A stretch of DNA of 64,000 bases. Origin: Rebecca billardiae RCC1528 (Eukaryota > Protista > Haptophyta). How positions within the stretch are numbered: position 1 is the first letter of the stretch; each line of letters opens with the position of its first letter. The stretch lies in NCBI GenBank assembly GCA_965240325.2, contig OZ251233.1, positions 2,232,001 to 2,296,000 of the forward strand, read 5' to 3'. The translations under genes and the position numbers were made by a program. Positions 10,862 to 27,062 of the stretch are shown piece after piece. The notes beneath the pieces were generated by a model. It saw only the letters and a program-made list of their open reading frames with translations. It was not told the DNA's origin and made no database searches.

Positions 10862-13800
10862 TCACGGCGTGGGGGTTGGCACCCGGGAGCGACATGGTCC
10901 CTCGTCCTGCGTGTCCTGCTGCTCGCCGCCGCCGCGGTTGCTCTCGTCCGCTGCAGCCGGGCTCCCAGTGCCGCGGGCAGCCTGGGCAGGCTGGTGGCTG
11001 CGCTGCTGCAGCTGGGCGCCGCCAAGGGAGGTAGCCGTGAACGCTCCCTTGGCGCCGCCCTCGAGCGCGTGGCCGCTGCTGCCGTCGTAGACGGCGAGCT
11101 GCCCGGCGAGGTCGACGCGCCACGGCACGTCGGCGTCCCCTGTGGCGCGGGACGCGGCCGGCGGCGAGTCTGGCGGCGGCAGCTCGCGCTCCGCCGCCTC
11201 CACACCCGCCTCCACGGCTGGCAGCAGCGCGCGCACCTCGGCATTCACGCGCGCCGCGCCCGCGAGCTGGACGGCGTGCGTGAACGCGCGGTGCTCGGCG
11301 CTGGCTCCGTCCGTGTCGAGCGCGAGCGCGCCGCCCTGCTGCTGCCCGTCGTCGAGGCGCGCGGCGCCGCCCAAGCTGCCGCTGGACAGCGCGCGTCGCG
11401 CGTACAGCACGTGGAACGCGTCGACCGCGGCGATGGCGGCGCGCAGCTCGGCGGCGCTTTCGCCCACCACCGCGAGCGCGACGTCGGCCAGCACGCCGCC
11501 GCTCGAGCGCCACGCGAGCAGTCGGCCGACGCACGGCAGGCACTCGAGGAGCGCGGGAGAGAGGAGGATGAGCATGCGCCTCGAGCGGCACATCGCAACC
11601 ACCTCGTGCGCGAGCAGCTGCGCCCGCTCGAGGTACGGGTCCGCGCACAGCGCGTCCAGCCACACGCGCGGCCACACGCCGCGCGCCTGGTGGTGCTCGC
11701 GCGCCCAGCGGCGCAGCGCGGCCGAGCGCGCCGCCGCCCCGTCCGCCGCGCAGTGCAGCACGTAATAGTCGATGGTCTCGGGGCTGGCCACGCGCGCATC
11801 GGAGACGTCGACGCGCGAGGTGACGCTCGCGCCGAGCGCGGCGAGGGCGAGCTGCCCGCTGGTGCGCAGCAGCCCAGGCGCGCGCGCGGACGTCCGGCGC
11901 CGCCAGCGCGTGAAGCCGTCAGCGCTGCCGCCGGCCGCGGGCGCGCGCGCGCCGGCCGCTGCGCCGCCCTCCGGCTCCCAGATGCGGCGCGCGACGTCGT
12001 CGTGCAGCTCGACGGCGCGGAGCGAGCGCAGGGCCTCGGGCACGAGGCGCGCGGGCTCGAGCCGCTGCTGCGTGCCGTACCCGACCAGCGGCGCGAGCGC
12101 GCTGCCCAGCCGGTCGCTCTCGCGCGAGGCGGCCGCGCGCTCGACGAGGGCGTGCAGCCGCGTGCGCACGGGCGGCAGCAGCAGCGCGATGCCGAGCGCG
12201 AGCGTGCCCAGCGTCACGCACAGCATCAGCGGCACGAGCGCGCGCGAGCGCGGCGCGTGCGCGCCGCCGTGGCCGAGCTCGTGCGCGCAGCGCCACGAGA
12301 TCAGCGCCGCGTATGGCACGGCGGTGCTGGCGGTCATGGCGGCCGCCCAGCGCCAGAGCGCGCGCAGCCGCGCCGCCTGCGCCTCCAGCCGCGCCGAGGC
12401 GGCCGTGCGCGCCCACGCGCGCGCGAGCAGCGCGTTGCCGACGAGGATGCACGCGGCGTTGAGCATGATCCACGTCGGGCTGAGCTCGAACTGCACGCGC
12501 GGCGGGGACGCGTAGCAGAACATGAACGCGCGCCGCTCCCGCCCCAGCTGGCCCACCGCGGCGCGCAGCGAGAGCGCGAGGAACGCGAGCATGTTGCCGC
12601 CGCCCAGCAGCGCCGCGGCAGAGGTCGCGCGGCTGTGGCTCGCGATCGGCTGCAGCGCGAGCAGGCAGAGCACGAAGCCGAGCAGCATGGCGGCGGCGCC
12701 CGCGATGCCCACCGCGTGCGCGCGCTCGTACGCGGCCGTGTCGGCCGCGGACGGCCGCGCCGAGAGCGCGACTGCGCCGTACGCGGTCGTGCCGAGCGCG
12801 CTCAGCAGGATGTACGCGTGCGCGGCCGCGCGCATCGCGCACTGCAGCCGCGTGCGCGCCGCGGCGATCGAGCTCTCGAGCAGCTGGATGATCTCCGCGC
12901 TCGAGAGGACGGCCCCGCCCCCGCCCTCGCGCGCGGGCAGCACGCTGCTCGCGCGGCGGCGCGCGCTGTCCGGCGTGCAGCTGAAGCGCCGCGCGCCGTC
13001 GGGAGTCATGTTTAGGCGGCCGGCGCGGCGCGCGCCGATGGCGAGCCCCGGGCTGCCGCGGCGCAGGTTCACCGGGCTGGGGCCGACCGCGCCGCGCAGC
13101 TCTGCCCTGCCCGTCGCGGCGAACCTGCGGTTGAGCCGGGCCGACACCGGCCCGCCCACCAGCACGACATCGTGGTACACCGTGCGCAGCAGCTCGAGCA
13201 CGTGCGCGCGCTCGATCGCGTGCTCGGCGCACAGGTGCAGCGCGTGCTCGGCCGCGGGCGCGGAGGGCGGCAGCCGCGGGTCGGCGCGGCCCACGCGCGC
13301 AAAGGCGGCCGAGGGCATGCCGGGCAGCACGCTCATCAGCGCGACCACGTCGTACGGCTTGACGTACCCGTTGAGGTGCGGCATGATGTCCGCACTCGCG
13401 TCGAGTGCGTGCAGGCCGCGCGCGCAGAAGCCGTCCGCGTCCACGCCGCAGAAGGTCTCAAAGTACCACTGCTTGGTGCAGCGCGCGGGCAGCTCGCCCG
13501 CGCACAGCCGCTTCCACAGCCCCTCGAGGCCGAGGAACTGCGCGTTCGCCAGGTACGCCATCACGGGCGACTGCGTGCGCTCGGCGAACGAGCGCGCGAG
13601 CTGCATCGGCAGCAGCGGCACCGCGTGCCGCGAGACGGCCGTGAGCGGCAGCCCTCTCGCGAAGCAAAAGTCGTAACACGCGGCCGCCGCCTCGCGGTCG
13701 AACTCGTTGTTCACGCTCGTGTCCGGCACCCACCTCGCCGCGGCCTCGTCGTACTCCAGCCCCGCCTGCACGCTCACGCGCGCCACCTTGCTCAGCACGA

Positions 13801-14347
13801 GGCTCGGCACGCGCGCCACCAAGTCCGCGAGGTCGCGCAGGCTCGAGATGCACACGACGACCACCGACTGCTCGCGCGCGCTCTGCAGCACGCGCACGAG
13901 CGAGGCGTGCGCGTCGGTCTCGAGCCGAGCGTCGCGCACCTCGCCGAAGCCCTCGAGCGCGTACTCGTGCGCGACGGGCTCGTAGCGCCGCGTGCCCTCC
14001 GAGCCGATCGCCACCGGCACGGCGCGCACCTCGATCGAATCGAGCAGGCAGCGCGCCAGCCGCGCGCGGTTCCGGGCCTGCTGGCCGCCGTTCGCGACGA
14101 CGAGGCGCAGGCAGATGTCGCCGCGCTTGTGCAGCGTGCCCGCGATCAGGATCGCCTGCAGTGCCGCGCCAGGCGCGCAGGGCCGCGGGCACGCAGGCAG
14201 GGGTCAACGCTCGAATGCGGCGCGGGAGCGGCGCACTGTGCCTGCCGGTGCGACATCGGCCCGCACCTTCACGTCATCGGGGTCTGGTCCCGGATCAGTG
14301 ATCAGCACGATGTCTCGCCTGCGCGGCTCGGAGCGTTGAGCCGCCAT
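10862..14347 (-). CDS. Nucleoside-hydrolase-fold domain + ~6 TM helices + C-terminal TIR/HET-like domain (~1124 aa); intron 14156-14266
   Basis: Exon 1 MAAQRSEPRRRDIVLITDPGPDPDDVK carries the Asp-rich IU-NH motif; later VPVAIG, ISSLRDLA, SVNNEFDREAA and PYDVVA; hydrophobic helices ~12170-12830; DYYVLH...RRWAREH...PRVWLDALC...RMLILLSPALLECLPCVGRL resembles algal TIR-like domains. Confidence 0.75.
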
Positions 14348-14435: not shown

Positions 14436-15544
14436 CAAGGGAGTCAAGGGTGCCCGCGCCCCAGTGGCGCGCTCGGCGGATGTTGGGATACACCTTTTTG
14501 CCCGGCGCCCTGCGGCGGCGGCGGCGATGGCGTGCTCCGCTGGCGGGGCGAGCGCACGGGGCACGGCGCTGCGGGCGCGGATGTGCCCGCGAAGCCGGCG
14601 CGTGCGGACGGGCTGTTGCGGGAGAGCATCTGGCGCCCTCCTGCGCCGCGCGACTTGCGCCACGCCTCTTTCGCCTCGGCTCAGAGCAGCGCGCACGCAC
14701 GCGCCGCCTCAAGGCCAGCCTTGCCGCGCCGCAGCCGACCGCGCGCGCGCCGTGCGCGGCGTGGTCGGGAAGGAACGGGCGCTGCTGCCGGGCGAGATGG
14801 CGACGTCATAGGCGCACGCCATGCCGCCCCGCCACGCCTTGACGAGAGTGTCGTCGGTCCGTTTGCACGCCTTTTCGACTTGTCACAAATGGTGTGCACT
14901 GCCTCGCGGTCGTGACCGTTGTCGGGACGATCATTGAGACACAGAACAGTGCCAGACGGGCACGCGGGCTACTCTTACATGAATGTTCATCACCGCGTGG
15001 TCATGTAGAAGTGCTGGGTGCGACGCTTTCCTCGCGCTGATGCTCTTTCATCATCTTCTTCGAGCTCAGGTCTGGCTTCAGGCACGGCAAGAAATCAGCA
15101 CTCGTCAACAGCTGTGCGGATCCGTTCTCGTGCTCTTTCGCGGCGCCGCGGGGCGGCATGGCGTGCGCCCATGACGTCGCCATCTCGCCCGGCAGCAGCG
15201 CCCGTTCCTTCCCGACCACGCCGCGCACGGCGCGCGCGCGGTCGGCTGCGGCGCGGCAAGGCTGGCCTTGAGGCGGCGCGTGCGTGCGCGCTGCTCTGAG
15301 CCGAGGCGAAAGAGGCGTGGCGCAAGTCGCGCGTCGCAGGAGGGCGCCCGATACTCTCCCGCAACAGCCCGTCCGCACGCGCCGGCTTCGCGGGCACATC
15401 CGCGCCCGCAGCGCCGTGCCCCGTGCGCTCGCCCCGCCAGCGGAGCACGCCATCGCCGCCGCCGCCGCAGGGCGCCGGGCAAAAAGGTGTATCCCAACAT
15501 CCGCCGAGCGCGCCACTGGGGCGCGGGCACCCTTGACTCCCTTG
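14436..15544. mobile_element. Foldback non-autonomous DNA transposon, P-element-like (397-bp TIRs, 7-bp TSD CTCGGGC)
   Basis: 14436-14832 is the reverse complement of 15148-15544 with about 4 mismatches; ends CAAGGGAG..CTCCCTTG; ctcgggc at 14429-14435 and 15545-15551. Confidence 0.88.
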
Positions 15545-15776: not shown

Positions 15777-15826
15777 CAATCTCGCCTGCCTGAGCTGTGT
15801 GCGTCTCTTATTCTTAGTTAACTGTA
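15777..15826 (-). repeat. Solo right TIR of the Tc1-like MITE family
   Basis: caatctcgcctgcctgagctgtgtgcgtctcttattcttagttaactg followed by TA; one mismatch to the TIR at 15859. Confidence 0.75.
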
Positions 15827-15858
15827 CGATGGTGCCCACCCAAACCCCCCAAAAGTTA

Positions 15859-16521
15859 CAGTTTACTAAGAATAAGAGACGCACACAGCTCAGGCAGGCG
15901 AGATTGACGCCCGTAGTACACCATAGACTGGTTACAGAAATCATTTTGAAATGTACCCGCTGGCGGCGGCGGCGGTTCGCTATTAATCAACGGATTGGCG
16001 AACCGCCGCCGCCTTCAGTTGCTGTGCACCGCGGCAACGCGCCGCGAGCCGACCAAGTCGCGCGCCACACGCGCGCGGTCGTCTGGGCAAGCCTGCCTGT
16101 GCCGCCTTCAAGGTGGCGGCGCGCACATGCGTACTGCTCCAAGGCGGGAAGGAGGCGACGCGGAGGACGGCGCTCGCGGGGCAAAGCAAGGCGCACTGCC
16201 GCTTTAGTGGCCGAGCGCCGCGCATCGTCAGCGGACCGACTCCGCCGACGCCGCGCCTCACGCCGTGCGCGGCCTCAGCGCCCTCCGCAGCTGATAGTAC
16301 TCGCACCGCTCCGCTCGATGACATCCGGACCTCATAGTCATCGCGGACGCGCGGCAATCGAACCGAATAGTGCTACTAGCTGGTCATTAGCAGCATCCGG
16401 TTTACACCGCCGCCAATCCGTAATTCATTCTAAGCTGGCACATCTAGTATTGTAATGCCATCAGTTCCGATCCGATTCTCGCCTGCCTGAGCTGTGTGCG
16501 TCTCTTATTCTCAGTAAACTG
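15859..16521. mobile_element. Tc1/mariner-type MITE (CAGTTTACT ends, ~45-bp TIRs, TA TSD)
   Basis: TA|cagtttactaagaataagagacgcacacagctcaggcaggcgaga ... tctcgcctgcctgagctgtgtgcgtctcttattctcagtaaactg|TA; no transposase ORF. Confidence 0.85.
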
Positions 16522-22961: not shown

Positions 22962-25900
22962 ATGGCGGCCTCCGGCCGCGCGCGCCCGCGGCGGGGCGAG
23001 CTGCGCGGGCTGCAGGCGCTCGTGCTGGTCGGCTCGGTTGCGCTACTCGTGGACTACCTCCTGGCCGCGCTCGTGCTGCGCCGGGTGCTGCCCGCGCGCC
23101 GCGCGCCGCCGCACGGCGCGGCGCCAGCGCGCGGCGCTCCGCGGGCTGGCGGCGGCGCCGACGCGGCGTCGGCGCTGCTCGAGCGCGTCGCGCGCCCGCG
23201 GCTCGAGTCGGTGCTGGCGGCGCCGTCCGAGCTGCGCATCTACGTGTACCCGCTCCCCGCCGCCTTCAACGAGGCCGCGCTCCGCGCGCTCGAGTCTGCG
23301 CCCGCAGACGTGCGCGCGTGGTACCCCCCCCTTCGGGTGGAGGTGGATGTGCACGAGGCGCTGCTGCGCTCGGCGTCGCGCACGCGCGATCCGGAGGAGG
23401 CCGACCTGTTCTACGTCCCCGTGTACGCATCGGCGCACATCCTCGTCGACAACGGCGAGCACGGCGTCGACTGGCCCGAGGGCAACCGCGCGCGCGCGAT
23501 CGCGTTTGTCCAGCGCGCGCTCGAGCACGTCGCGGGTGTCGCGCCGCACTTCAACGCGTCGGGCGGGCGCGACCACGTGCTCACGCTGTCGTACGACTTT
23601 GGGCGGTGCCTCACGCACGTCCCCGCGCTCGCCGCCGACGGCGTGGGCCCGCGCCTCGCCCGCCACGCCATCGTGCTGTCGATGTTTGCCGACGGCGCGC
23701 GCGCGCCGGGCGGCCGCTGCCACGCGCACGGCCAGGACGTGGTGATCCCGCCGCGCGTCGAGGCGGCGCGGCTGCCCGACGCGGCGGCGGTGCGCGGCAG
23801 CGCGCGGAACGAGACGCTCCTCTACTTCCGCGGGCGCACCAAGGCGTACCTCCCCGCCGCGCGCAGGCACGACCCGGTCGGCGCCGACTGCTACCGTGGG
23901 CGCGCGGAGCCGGCCAACGCGTGCGGCGCCGTGTACTCGGCCGGCGTGCGGCAGCTGGTGGTGGCGCTGCACGCGGGCAGGGCGGGGTTCGAGGTGAGCT
24001 CGACGACGGACGCGCAGGTGCGCAAGTCGGCGCAGTCGCACGCCGACGCCTCCGCCGCGATGCTGCGCGCGCGCCACTGCCTGTGCGCCGCGGGCCTCGC
24101 GCCCTGGTCGCCCCGCCTCGTCGAGGCTCTGGCGCATGGCTGCACGCCGCTCTTCACGTCGCTCTCGCCGCCGGCGGAGCTGCTGCCGTTCGGCGAGCTG
24201 GTGGACTGGCGCGCGCTCTCCGACCGCGTGGACGCGTCCGAGCTCGCCGCGCTCCCCGCCGCGCTCGCCGCGCTGCGCGCGCGCGAGGGCGCGCCGACGG
24301 CGCCGCAGCTCGGCCTCGCGTCCTCCCTGATGCGCTACAGGGGGCCTGGGCCGTCGGCGTCGGCGTCGGCGGCGGGCAGGGCGCGCGGGCTGGACGCGCA
24401 CGCGCTGATCGAGTACTCGCTGCGCCCGCGCGCCGCGTGCGCCCGCGTGCGCATGCGGCACGACGCCACCCTCGCGCGCGCGCTCGCCCTGCACCGCGCG
24501 GAGCTGCGGGCTGAGGAGGCGGCGCGCGCGGAGCAGGCGCGCGCGCTGCCGCCCGAGCCGCCGCCGCCGCCGTTCCGCTGGGCGGCGCCCGGCGCGTCGG
24601 TGGACGGCGTGGGCGCGCGCTCCGACGTGGGCGGCCCCGGCGGCGGCCTCGGCGGGCCGCACGGCCTCAAGCTGTACGTGTACGCGCTGCCCTCGGAGTA
24701 CAACCGCGCATTCGTGGCCTCCAACCCTAAGTGCTCCTCGCACATGTTCAGCTGGGACGTGTACCTGCACGCGCGGCTGATGGCGGACGGCGGGGAGGAG
24801 GGGCTGGCGACGGGCGTGCGCACGGAGAACGCCTCCGAGGCCGACCTCTTCTTCGTGCCCGTGTACACGATGTGCAACTTCAACGCGTGCGCGCGGCCGC
24901 GCGCGCGCTCCACGCGGCCTCGCGCCGCGCGCGCCCACACGCGCGCCCCCGCCGCGCGCGCGGCGCGCTCGCGCCGCAGGCGCGGGCTGGCGATGCAGGA
25001 GCTGTCGCGGCCGCTCGTCGAGGGCGCGATCGCGTACATCGCCTCGGCCCACCCGTGGTGGGCGCGGCACGGCGGGCGCGACCACGTGTTTGCGCTGCCC
25101 GGCGACTACGGCGGCTGCTTCACGTATCGGCGCGCGCCAAGCAATTCCATCCCGAGGGCGCTGCGCTCGTCGGTGCTGCTGCAGACGTACGGCGAGGTGG
25201 GGCGGCCGTGCTACGCGGGCGCGGCGGCGACGGTCGTCGTGCCCGCCGTCGCGTCCAACGTCGCGTTCCGCGCGAGCGCGCGCGGCGTGCGGCCGCGTAC
25301 CACTCTCGCCTACTTCCGAGGCGACTGCCACGAGCTGGGCGGCGGCGGCGGCGGCGGCGCGGCGGCCGAGGGCGGCGGCGGCGGCGGGGGCAACGGCTCG
25401 GCGGCGGGGGGCGGCGAGGCGGGCGCGCGCTGGTCGGCGGACGCGTACACCGCGGGCCTCGCGCGCCAGCTCTTCTCCGCGCGCGCGCAGCTCGTGCGGC
25501 ACTGGGCGGGGCGCGACCCGCGCGTGCGCATCGAGTGCGGCCGCGCCTCGCGCCAGCAGTACCTGCTCGAGATGGCGCAGTCGACGTTCTGCCTCGCGCC
25601 GAGGGGGTGGGCGCCGTGGTCGGCGCGGCTCTTCGAGGCGCTCGAGGTGGGGTGCATCCCCGTGCTCCTCGCCGACGGCATCGTCCTCCCGTTCGCGCAG
25701 ACCATCGACTGGTCCTCCATCGCCGTCGTGCTGCCAGAGGGCCGCGTGGACGCGTTGCTCGACCATCTCGAGGCGATCTCGCCCGAGCGCGTGCGCAGGA
25801 TGCAGGGCGCGCTCGCGGCGCTGCGCCCGTCGCTGCTCTTCTCGTGGCCTCCCGCGCCGTGCGACGCGTACGAGCTCACCCTGCTCTCGCTCGCGAGGCT

Positions 25901-27062
25901 GCTGCCGCGCGTCTCCGCGCGCGGCGGCTCGGCCACGCGCGAGTTTGTGCGCGAGCGGAGCGCGCGCGTCGCCGCGCGCCGCGCGGCCGCGGGCGGCGCG
26001 CAACACGGCGGCGGCGGCGGCGCAGCAGCCGGCGGCGGGGGCGGCTCGGAAGACGCCGTGGCGGCGGCCGCGGCGGCGGCCGAGGCCGAGGCCGAGGCGG
26101 GCGCGGACGCCGAGGCAGGCGGCGCGGCGGATGCGGGCGCGCAGCGTGGCTCGCGCGCGACGCCCGATGCCTCCGCTGCGCGGCCCGCGCCGGGCGCGCG
26201 TGGCGCCGCGGCGGAGCCGCCGGCCCCCGCGCGCGCCGCGCCCGCGGCCAGCGGCGCGTCGGAGCCGGGCGCGCCCCCCTCCTCCGCCTCCGGCGTGCTC
26301 GAGCTCGTGCTCCTGTACGGCTCGAGCTGCACGGGCAAGAGCGTCGCGGCCCGGGCGCTGGCGTCCTTCCTGGCCGAGGGCGGGCTGCCCGCGCGCGCGC
26401 TCGAGGCGGACGCGCTCATCCCGGGCGCGCTGTACGCGGAGCGGCGGCGGGCGGAGGAGGGCGGCGCGCTGCACCGCGCGCTCGAGCGCGCGCTCGGCGA
26501 GGCCGGCGCCCGCCCGCCGCCGCTCGACGCGCTGAGCGACGTGCGCGTGCAGAGCGAGGCGACGGCGGCCGTGCAGCTGCGCGCGCTCACCCACCTGCTG
26601 CCCGAGCTGTGGGCGGCGCACGCGCGCCCGCTCGGCGGTGGCGCGTGCCGCGCGCTCGTGGTGGTGAGCACGTGCAGCTTCCTGCCGCTGCCGCCCGGCG
26701 CGCGTGCCGAGCGGCCGGGGCCACTCGGCTGGCTGCGCGCGGCGCTGCGCGCTGAGCACGGGCTGGCGCTGCGCATCACGCCGATCGGCATCGAGATCGG
26801 GCACAAGGAGCACCTCAGGGCGCTCGAGCGCGAGCGCGGCTTCTTCGACGAGGGCATGCGCGCCGCGTTCGCCGAGCTTCAGCGCGCGTACCAGGCGAAT
26901 TACTCGGACGCGGGCGTCGCGCTGCGGCTCAAGCAGTGGGGGCCGCGCTCCGGCTTCGAGAAGCACCCGAAGCACCCATTCGCGCGCGTGCGCACGGGGC
27001 TGCTCGAGCGGCTGCGCGGGCCGGGCGCGTGCGGCGCGGCCGCCGCCGACGCCGCGGCGTGA
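22962..27062 (+). CDS. Type II membrane protein with two exostosin (GT47) domains and a C-terminal P-loop domain; probable intron 24887-24979
   Basis: Two copies of LxIYVYxLP / TxDPEEADLFxVPVY / GGRDHV / CLxPxGxAPWSxRLxEAL..GCxP; LELVLLYGSSCTGKS Walker A near 26300. Confidence 0.88.
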   Translation: MAASGRARPRRGELRGLQALVLVGSVALLVDYLLAALVLRRVLPARRAPPHGAAPARGAPRAGGGADAASALLERVARPRLESVLAAPSELRIYVYPLPAAFNEAALRALESAPADVRAWYPPLRVEVDVHEALLRSASRTRDPEEADLFYVPVYASAHILVDNGEHGVDWPEGNRARAIAFVQRALEHVAGVAPHFNASGGRDHVLTLSYDFGRCLTHVPALAADGVGPRLARHAIVLSMFADGARAPGGRCHAHGQDVVIPPRVEAARLPDAAAVRGSARNETLLYFRGRTKAYLPAARRHDPVGADCYRGRAEPANACGAVYSAGVRQLVVALHAGRAGFEVSSTTDAQVRKSAQSHADASAAMLRARHCLCAAGLAPWSPRLVEALAHGCTPLFTSLSPPAELLPFGELVDWRALSDRVDASELAALPAALAALRAREGAPTAPQLGLASSLMRYRGPGPSASASAAGRARGLDAHALIEYSLRPRAACARVRMRHDATLARALALHRAELRAEEAARAEQARALPPEPPPPPFRWAAPGASVDGVGARSDVGGPGGGLGGPHGLKLYVYALPSEYNRAFVASNPKCSSHMFSWDVYLHARLMADGGEEGLATGVRTENASEADLFFVPVYTMCNFNACARPRARSTRPRAARAHTRAPAARAARSRRRRGLAMQELSRPLVEGAIAYIASAHPWWARHGGRDHVFALPGDYGGCFTYRRAPSNSIPRALRSSVLLQTYGEVGRPCYAGAAATVVVPAVASNVAFRASARGVRPRTTLAYFRGDCHELGGGGGGGAAAEGGGGGGGNGSAAGGGEAGARWSADAYTAGLARQLFSARAQLVRHWAGRDPRVRIECGRASRQQYLLEMAQSTFCLAPRGWAPWSARLFEALEVGCIPVLLADGIVLPFAQTIDWSSIAVVLPEGRVDALLDHLEAISPERVRRMQGALAALRPSLLFSWPPAPCDAYELTLLSLARLLPRVSARGGSATREFVRERSARVAARRAAAGGAQHGGGGGAAAGGGGGSEDAVAAAAAAAEAEAEAGADAEAGGAADAGAQRGSRATPDASAARPAPGARGAAAEPPAPARAAPAASGASEPGAPPSSASGVLELVLLYGSSCTGKSVAARALASFLAEGGLPARALEADALIPGALYAERRRAEEGGALHRALERALGEAGARPPPLDALSDVRVQSEATAAVQLRALTHLLPELWAAHARPLGGGACRALVVVSTCSFLPLPPGARAERPGPLGWLRAALRAEHGLALRITPIGIEIGHKEHLRALERERGFFDEGMRAAFAELQRAYQANYSDAGVALRLKQWGPRSGFEKHPKHPFARVRTGLLERLRGPGACGAAAADAAA

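Follow-up and report, generated by a model that had tools for sequence, protein, structure and literature searches.

What is encoded by a gene that begins like a nucleoside hydrolase, continues as a membrane protein and ends in a domain resembling TIR modules, and is it one gene at all? This question is raised by a locus in the genome of the haptophyte Rebecca billardiae RCC1528, within a 64,000-nucleotide stretch of contig OZ251233.1 (positions 2,232,001 to 2,296,000; C16:2232001-2296000 in our contig numbering) that was analysed as a whole and is called the window below. The gene is real as it was first described, and the elements named in the preliminary description are present at the positions given there. 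We hold with high confidence that it is a two-exon gene whose product is a six-pass membrane protein of approximately 1,124 residues, in which an N-terminal domain of the HopQ1-like protein (HLP) clan with its Asp residues intact is joined to a C-terminal TIR fold that has lost its Glu, both being predicted to be cytosolic, and that it belongs to a family of at least 55 paralogues. Positions of all parts are collected in Table 1.

The GC content of the region is 72-78%, and long open reading frames (ORFs) arise by chance on both of its strands. Exon 2 is collinear over residues 1-986/1009 with L053 and L054, its nearest paralogues (56-57% identity), and also with P0003, the product of a complete MMETSP transcript (34% identity across 84% of the length), and the frame as a whole is collinear with 36 database proteins at E-values down to 4e-126; it is therefore a real coding frame belonging to a single gene, and not a chance ORF. 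Similarity to the paralogues stops at exon-2 residue 986-1009, before the C-terminal tail. Exons 1 and 2 were left unjoined and analysed separately in all sequence searches. The splice junction, DPDDVK/AILI, was confirmed in two ways, as 13 relatives, including transcript-derived proteins, read DPDDVKALL, and paralogues that lack the intron (L055, L059 and L061-L063) read DPDDVKA[IL]LI without interruption. An intron is found at the identical site in L053, L054, L056, L057 and L058. The single minus-strand frame, collinear with paralogues and with complete transcripts of relatives, bears out the initial proposal of one gene in three parts, and the alternative of two separate genes was rejected on the continuity of the frame together with those transcripts.

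The fusion extends beyond this genome. With phmmer, a hydrolase joined to a TIR-like domain was found in 25 of 36 database homologues, and the TIR-like domain was always accompanied by the hydrolase. These homologues include proteins from Pavlova gyrans and from MMETSP transcripts marked as complete, the latter providing cDNA-level evidence for the fusion in relatives. All of the named relatives are pavlovophyte haptophytes, namely Diacronema lutheri, Pavlovales sp. CCMP2436 and P. gyrans. One homologue, P0024 (947 aa, from a Logan assembly), has the reversed order, with the TIR-like domain at residues 270-386 and the hydrolase at residues 497-819.

As judged from its sequence, the N-terminal domain belongs to the HLP/XopQ clan and not to the canonical IU-NH enzymes. 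A search of PDB chain sequences with exon-2 residues 1-330 matched only XopQ (4kl0, 4p5f and 7jlu_B, E ~1e-16) and no canonical IU-NH, despite the many that have been deposited. The contiguous homologue P0001 matched XopQ in the PDB at an E-value of 8e-22 over the full XopQ core, including the Asp motif, and the sole match in an NCBIfam search was the XopQ model (NF041355, E 2e-23). The TDPGPDPDD of exon 1, which is invariant in 13 family members and aligns with TDPNKDPDD of XopQ, is a calcium-binding and catalytic Asp motif of the form DXXXDXDD; this form defines the HLP clan, whereas canonical nucleoside hydrolases carry DXDXXXDD (PMC11685791). The second catalytic Asp is Asp269 of exon 2 (codon 13349-13351, within a YD pair at 13349-13354), the counterpart of XopQ D399 in a mapping onto chain 7jlu_B that assumes a 13-residue tag offset. 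Here KPYDVV is aligned to LYDPL of XopQ, so that a Tyr precedes the Asp where canonical enzymes have their leaving-group His. Ribose-binding Asp and Asn residues are also present. When the exon-2 part was searched without the 27 residues of exon 1, the Pfam model IU_nuc_hydro (PF01156) remained below its gathering threshold (26 bits against 34.2, E 9e-6), and Pfam searches with the 1,055-aa ORF and with the three pieces gave nothing beyond this sub-threshold match; a precomputed PF01156 match is on record for many full-length homologues. The preliminary description had read the domain as a nucleoside hydrolase of the IU-NH type: the nucleoside-hydrolase fold and the TDPGPDPDD motif stand, and the canonical IU-NH assignment was rejected, being contradicted by the DXXXDXDD motif and the XopQ-only PDB matches.

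XopQ and HopQ1 are type III effectors (of Xanthomonas and Pseudomonas syringae, respectively). XopQ shares with the algal domain its fold, sequence homology at E-values of 1e-16 to 1e-22, the DXXXDXDD motif, a YD pair that supplies the second catalytic Asp, and an Asn-rich ribose site. According to a 2026 preprint, XopQ converts 2'-cyclic ADP-ribose (2'cADPR) to ADP-ribose (ADPR) at a near diffusion-limited kcat/Km of 1.4e7, is inactive on 3'cADPR, cADPR, pRib-AMP and nucleosides, and is catalytically dead when D120N and D399N are combined; 2'cADPR is the sole substrate reported for this HLP subtype, and the bond cut in it is O-glycosidic (bioRxiv 10.64898/2026.06.15.732069). The N-glycosidic cleavage expected in the preliminary description does not hold for the XopQ subtype for this reason. 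Unlike the effectors, the algal protein has neither a secretion leader nor a 14-3-3 site, is encoded by an endogenous eukaryotic gene and carries its hydrolase on one chain with six membrane helices and a TIR fold. Because its score lies below the equivalog cut-off of the XopQ model and the secretion and 14-3-3 region is absent, sequence comparison makes it a distant relative of XopQ and not an XopQ orthologue.

A housekeeping function, in which a membrane-bound nucleoside hydrolase serves purine or pyrimidine salvage and the TIR-like domain is a structural appendage without a part in signalling, would account for the Pfam IU_nuc_hydro match of many homologues and for the ribose-binding Asp and Asn residues. 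We consider it very unlikely, as the motif is DXXXDXDD in place of DXDXXXDD, Tyr stands where the leaving-group His would be, as in XopQ, and neither XopQ nor HopQ1 acts on common nucleosides. For salvage, moreover, one would not expect at least 55 fast-diverging paralogues, each tied to a TIR fold.

The C-terminal part was modelled by AlphaFold2 (AF2) as a domain in which strands and helices alternate (pLDDT 84, pTM 0.80). A VIA-align comparison of this model with 48,161 chains placed TIR domains at ranks 1-14 (Z 8.1-9.6, 114-141 residues aligned), including those of MyD88, SpbK, RPP1, Hydra TRR-2, IL-1RAcPb and SARM1, with 2'-deoxyribosyltransferases below all 14, and the leading Foldseek rows were almost all TIRs at probabilities of 0.97-0.99. 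When a profile of the family was compared with the PDB, the TIRs of TLR and SIGIRR came first (E 0.13-0.23); in this alignment the family pattern ...LILAGP.L...L.C..ELY lies against ...LFVLSPSFVNSCWCQYELYF, with the WCxxE of the family opposite WCqYEL of TLR. The consensus of 23 sequences is ..D.YVVHS..DD...K..AL..WA......P..W.D..CA......RRLL.LAGP.L...LWC..ELY.W. Taken together, the models make the assignment of a TIR fold to the C-terminal domain a sound one. The preliminary description had located a TIR-like domain at about 11400-11780 and had named a TIR/flavodoxin-like fold beforehand as the property on which its reading depended; this fold was found by AF2, VIA-align and Foldseek, over the interval given in Table 1.

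Membership in the HET family (PF06985) was also considered and was rejected, as the Pfam HET model matched one of 23 relatives at an E-value of 1.6 and the structural matches were TIRs. The nearest Atlas clusters of the domain are haptophyte fragments that were automatically named HET or TIR domain proteins, and it is in these names that the likeness to fungal HET and algal "TIR/HET-like" modules lies, while profile and structure point to TIR. The Pfam model TIR_2 matched two of the 23 relatives weakly (best E 0.013). A word search with the TIR-like part only (region 785-990) gave no match, which does not imply absence, the search being word-limited and probably swamped by Ala-rich words.

We take the Glu of the WCxxE-type motif, WCLxEL in plant TIRs, to be the TIR catalytic residue. 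This Glu was required for TIR catalysis in every case tested (10.64898/2026.04.20.719644). In the copy under study, the site at which the family has WCxxE reads PCVGR, within CLPCVGRLLAW at 11510-11542, so that the Glu is replaced by Arg878 of exon 2 (codon 11522-11524) and the Trp four residues earlier by Pro. With the Glu lost, the TIR domain of this copy is predicted to be non-catalytic, as had been suspected when CLPCVGR was first noticed in place of the usual motif; the comparison with the family WCxxE consensus places the Arg exactly at the Glu site. This sets it apart from the catalytic TIRs (plant TNL and TIR-only proteins, SARM1, Thoeris ThsB and TIR-APAZ), with which the family has in common the fold and the WCxxE at the catalytic Glu position: in this copy Arg stands in for the Glu and Pro for the Trp, the domain is missed by the Pfam TIR models, and it is carried at the C-terminal end of a multipass membrane protein. 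A structure prediction of the TIR-like domain as a homodimer scored 0.00 and was given no weight either way.

The genome (72 Mb in 41 contigs) was searched with profiles, giving at least 156 TIR-like matches and at least 135 hydrolase exon matches; when the two tables were paired by eye, there were at least 55 loci at which a TIR-like domain has a hydrolase 2-5 kb upstream in the same orientation. Of the best 52 TIR-like paralogues, 23 have Glu at the catalytic position and nine have Arg; Ala and Gln occur in five each, Gly and Leu in three each, and the remaining four have other residues. A maximum-likelihood tree placed this gene, with copies on C17 and C3 as its nearest relatives, inside a 12-member clade (nine Arg and three Gly copies; support 100/97) to which a Gln copy is sister (support 99/94). 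Eleven paralogue loci from the Glu-less clade were fetched in full (L053-L063), and 10 of them have kept D.G.D.DD, which was not seen in L060 in the stretch searched.

For the hydrolase, five comparisons inside the 12-member clade (Nei-Gojobori) gave ratios of nonsynonymous to synonymous substitution rates (dN/dS) of 0.34-0.45. The ratio in the TIR domain was 0.35-0.84, with values of 0.35-0.55 when the nearest paralogues were compared, and it was 0.75-1.2 for the juxtamembrane segment, 0.5-1.4 for the membrane block and 0.36-1.6 for the linker, where the ratio exceeded 1 in all comparisons but that of the recent L053/L054 pair (0.36); as dS is compressed by an extreme bias in third-position GC (GC3), the absolute ratios are inflated and unreliable, and the ranking of the parts was used. 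This ranking shows the TIR domain of the Glu-less clade to be still constrained, although predicted to be dead as an enzyme. A decaying paralogue, in which loss of the Glu marks a gene that is becoming a pseudogene without a function of its own, would agree with the absence of both the catalytic Glu and the Trp and with a foldback repeat directly upstream of the start codon. Nevertheless, the 3.3-kb frame is intact and the intron valid, and the replacement motif C[VI]GRLLAWRA[ST] is near-unchanged in six of the nine Arg copies of a strongly supported clade, the other three reading GRL[LV]AW with one or two more substitutions. The TIR ratio against the closest paralogues is, moreover, well under that of the linkers, and decay is in our judgement extremely unlikely.

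Two other groups of matches were seen in the genome. Three clustered short ORFs on C12 (124863-125327, 130318-130779 and 133162-133623; 284-295 aa) match the TIR-like profile only, have no hydrolase nearby and look like stand-alone TIR-like members in a local tandem or inverted cluster. Distant XopQ-like matches (35-44% identity) lie in open frames of approximately 1,800-2,360 aa, none of them close to a TIR-like match, at C7:2969273-2970163, C12:2177212-2178144, C16:1320648-1321538, C27:158127-158981 and C1:4195432-4196253; the HLP domain is thus present in further architectures in this genome.

Between the hydrolase and the TIR domain, AF2 predicted helices at exon-2 residues 419-464, 473-500, 505-537, 553-583, 589-628 and 640-675 (model of residues 405-700 from a 20-sequence alignment; pLDDT 84, pTM 0.80). 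Hydropathy analysis of this copy gave four strong and two weaker segments, and in the closest paralogues all six peaks stand out clearly, at corresponding positions. Only 11 residues precede the hydrolase fold, which starts at residue 12, and there is no signal peptide. Since a signal peptide is lacking and the number of helices is even, the hydrolase and the TIR domain should both be cytosolic; that they would face the same side had been anticipated in the preliminary description from six helices; the positive-inside bias is slight. A phmmer search with the middle region gave no match among the 36 homologues, but BLAST with close relatives and paralogues does align it. In the linker and membrane block (12131-13150), the nonsynonymous rate is about equal to the synonymous rate against the other sampled paralogues, with the exception of the recent L053/L054 pair, whereas the hydrolase and TIR domains are both constrained; this fast change may reflect a variable or sensing region, or relaxed constraint together with GC3-compressed dS.

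A different role for the membrane block is that of an output. The protein could be a ligand-gated membrane effector in which the XopQ-like domain binds an ADP-ribose-type nucleotide without turning it over, the dead TIR domain serves for assembly alone and the six-helix block acts as a pore or channel, resembling the membrane effectors of Thoeris and CBASS, which open in response to the product of a TIR or a cyclase. XopQ has been crystallised with ADPR bound and closes around it (PMC8910321), type VII Thoeris has a membrane-spanning effector triggered by cADPR, the TIR domain is catalytically dead in the clade of this gene, and the six-helix block is confidently modelled and has been retained in every family member examined. 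On the other hand, the catalytic Asp residues of the hydrolase have been kept in 13 relatives and in 10 of the 11 fetched paralogues, which fits an enzyme better than a binder, and the membrane block is the least conserved of the folded parts (dN/dS about 0.5-1.4). The block also has no fold relative among channels: searches of solved and Atlas structures with the six-helix model gave no convincing match (best E 0.23, TM-score by query 0.34). We regard this reading as unlikely, though not negligible.

The explanation that we favour, tentatively and with somewhat less than even confidence, is that a XopQ-like hydrolase of an ADP-ribose-type TIR product is anchored at the membrane beside a non-catalytic TIR scaffold. 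Across the family, Glu-bearing TIR domains would turn NAD+ into an ADP-ribose-type product, and the fused XopQ-like domain, by analogy with the conversion of 2'cADPR to ADPR, would hydrolyse it, so that a single polypeptide anchored in the membrane would both make the signal and break it. The fusion of a XopQ-type enzyme to a TIR domain suggests in this way that production of an ADP-ribose-type signal and its removal or conversion are coupled at the membrane. In the copy described here, the Glu-less TIR scaffold may bring an active hydrolase to TIR assemblies and act as an attenuator or signal sink, and the fast-evolving membrane block and linkers may constitute the variable or sensing part. 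Such a role would agree with the idea, put forward in the preliminary description, of an inactive TIR domain with the hydrolase as effector. Non-catalytic scaffold TIRs, such as the animal TLR and IL-1R adaptors and RRS1 in its pairing with RPS4, likewise have a TIR fold that lacks the Glu yet is under selection; RPS4/RRS1 (4c6t) is among the structural matches, and assembly with other TIRs as in those scaffolds is presumed here. They differ in having LRR, Ig or NB-ARC modules in the place taken here by a hydrolase and a six-helix block.

Several observations weigh against this explanation or against the assignments on which it is built. The enzyme activity of eukaryotic HLPs, and that of this TIR-like family, is argued by analogy, and the TIRs of eukaryotic microbes that have been assayed to date yielded cADPR or 3'cADPR, neither of which is cleaved by XopQ (10.64898/2026.04.20.719644; bioRxiv 10.64898/2026.06.15.732069). 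The hydrolase domain is approximately 25-30% identical to XopQ and scores 82.6 bits against an equivalog cut-off of 500 in NCBIfam, and its substrate may differ. Foldseek E-values for the TIR fold are weak (0.02 or worse), and no Pfam TIR family is matched by this copy at E-values up to 10. To these is added the compression of dS described above.

Both the HLP clan and TIR domains were already known, and HLPs were previously reported in the algae Aureococcus, Thalassiosira and Emiliania, where the nucleoside-hydrolase-like domain was analysed alone (PMC6019455). The HLP-six-helix-TIR fusion, its expansion and the split into Glu and Glu-less copies are undescribed in the literature found. A XopQ-type enzyme welded to a TIR domain in eukaryotes makes a strong case, through guilt by fusion, that HLPs and TIR products belong together outside of plant-pathogen warfare, and would indicate that haptophyte-type algae use TIR-nucleotide signalling. 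Since Pfam fails to detect its TIR domain, the family would be overlooked in surveys based on the Pfam TIR models. Glu-bearing and Glu-less paralogues in one genome also form natural pairs in which a TIR signal at a membrane could be followed from its making to its limitation and sensing.

It is possible that the family belongs to an algal system of immunity or signalling that has yet to be described. In a broader and rather doubtful form of this proposal, pavlovophyte-type algae would possess an endogenous, membrane-based TIR nucleotide signalling in which a Glu-TIR maker and a XopQ-type breaker are fused, and the Glu-less subfamily that includes this gene would serve as hydrolase-carrying negative regulators or decoys. 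If this were true, XopQ-type activity would represent an ancient self-regulation of eukaryotic TIR signalling beyond its use as a pathogen weapon, and the family, which has grown more than 50-fold, would be for algae what NLR or HET repertoires are elsewhere, directed for example against giant viruses. The family could also be used to ask if repertoires of this kind protect marine phytoplankton from viruses.

Table 1. Parts of the fusion gene, in positions of the window
Feature	Position	Strand	Remarks
Whole gene	14347-10862	minus	ATG at 14347, stop codon 10862-10864; two exons, 1,124 codons
Exon 1	14267..14347	minus	27 codons; start codon, first strand of the hydrolase fold and TDPGPDPDD; ends ...TDPGPDPDDVK
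Intron	14156..14266	minus	111 nt, GT..AG, phase 0; contains an in-frame TGA
Exon 2	14155-10862	minus	1,097 codons plus stop codon
XopQ/HopQ1-like (HLP) nucleoside-hydrolase-fold domain, remainder	13151..14155	minus	Exon-2 residues 1-335; NNEFDREAA and YD pair
Arg/Ser-rich linker	12902..13150	minus	Exon-2 residues 336-418; poorly conserved
Six-helix membrane block	12131..12901	minus	Exon-2 residues 419-675; hydropathy and AF2
Juxtamembrane segment	11780..12130	minus	Family-conserved APL[IV]GYG...EP motif
TIR-fold domain and C-terminal helices	11186..11779	minus	AF2, VIA-align and Foldseek
C-terminal tail and stop codon	10862..11185	minus	Low complexity, not conserved; putative 3' end of the coding sequence

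Upstream of the ATG lies a large foldback with arms of 403 nt at 14436-14838 and 15142-15544, which are 99% complementary and 303 nt apart; the arm closer to the gene stops 89 bp short of the start codon. The structure (14436-15544) may be a foldback transposon or a feature of the promoter region. A small inverted repeat with 44-nt arms (15783-15826 and 15857-15900; 98% complementary, 30 nt apart) lies further out in a stretch of lower GC content. Elsewhere in the window, a long ORF on the plus strand (22962-27059) encodes an Exostosin GT47 glycosyltransferase domain (Pfam E 4e-85) and is apparently unrelated to the fusion gene.

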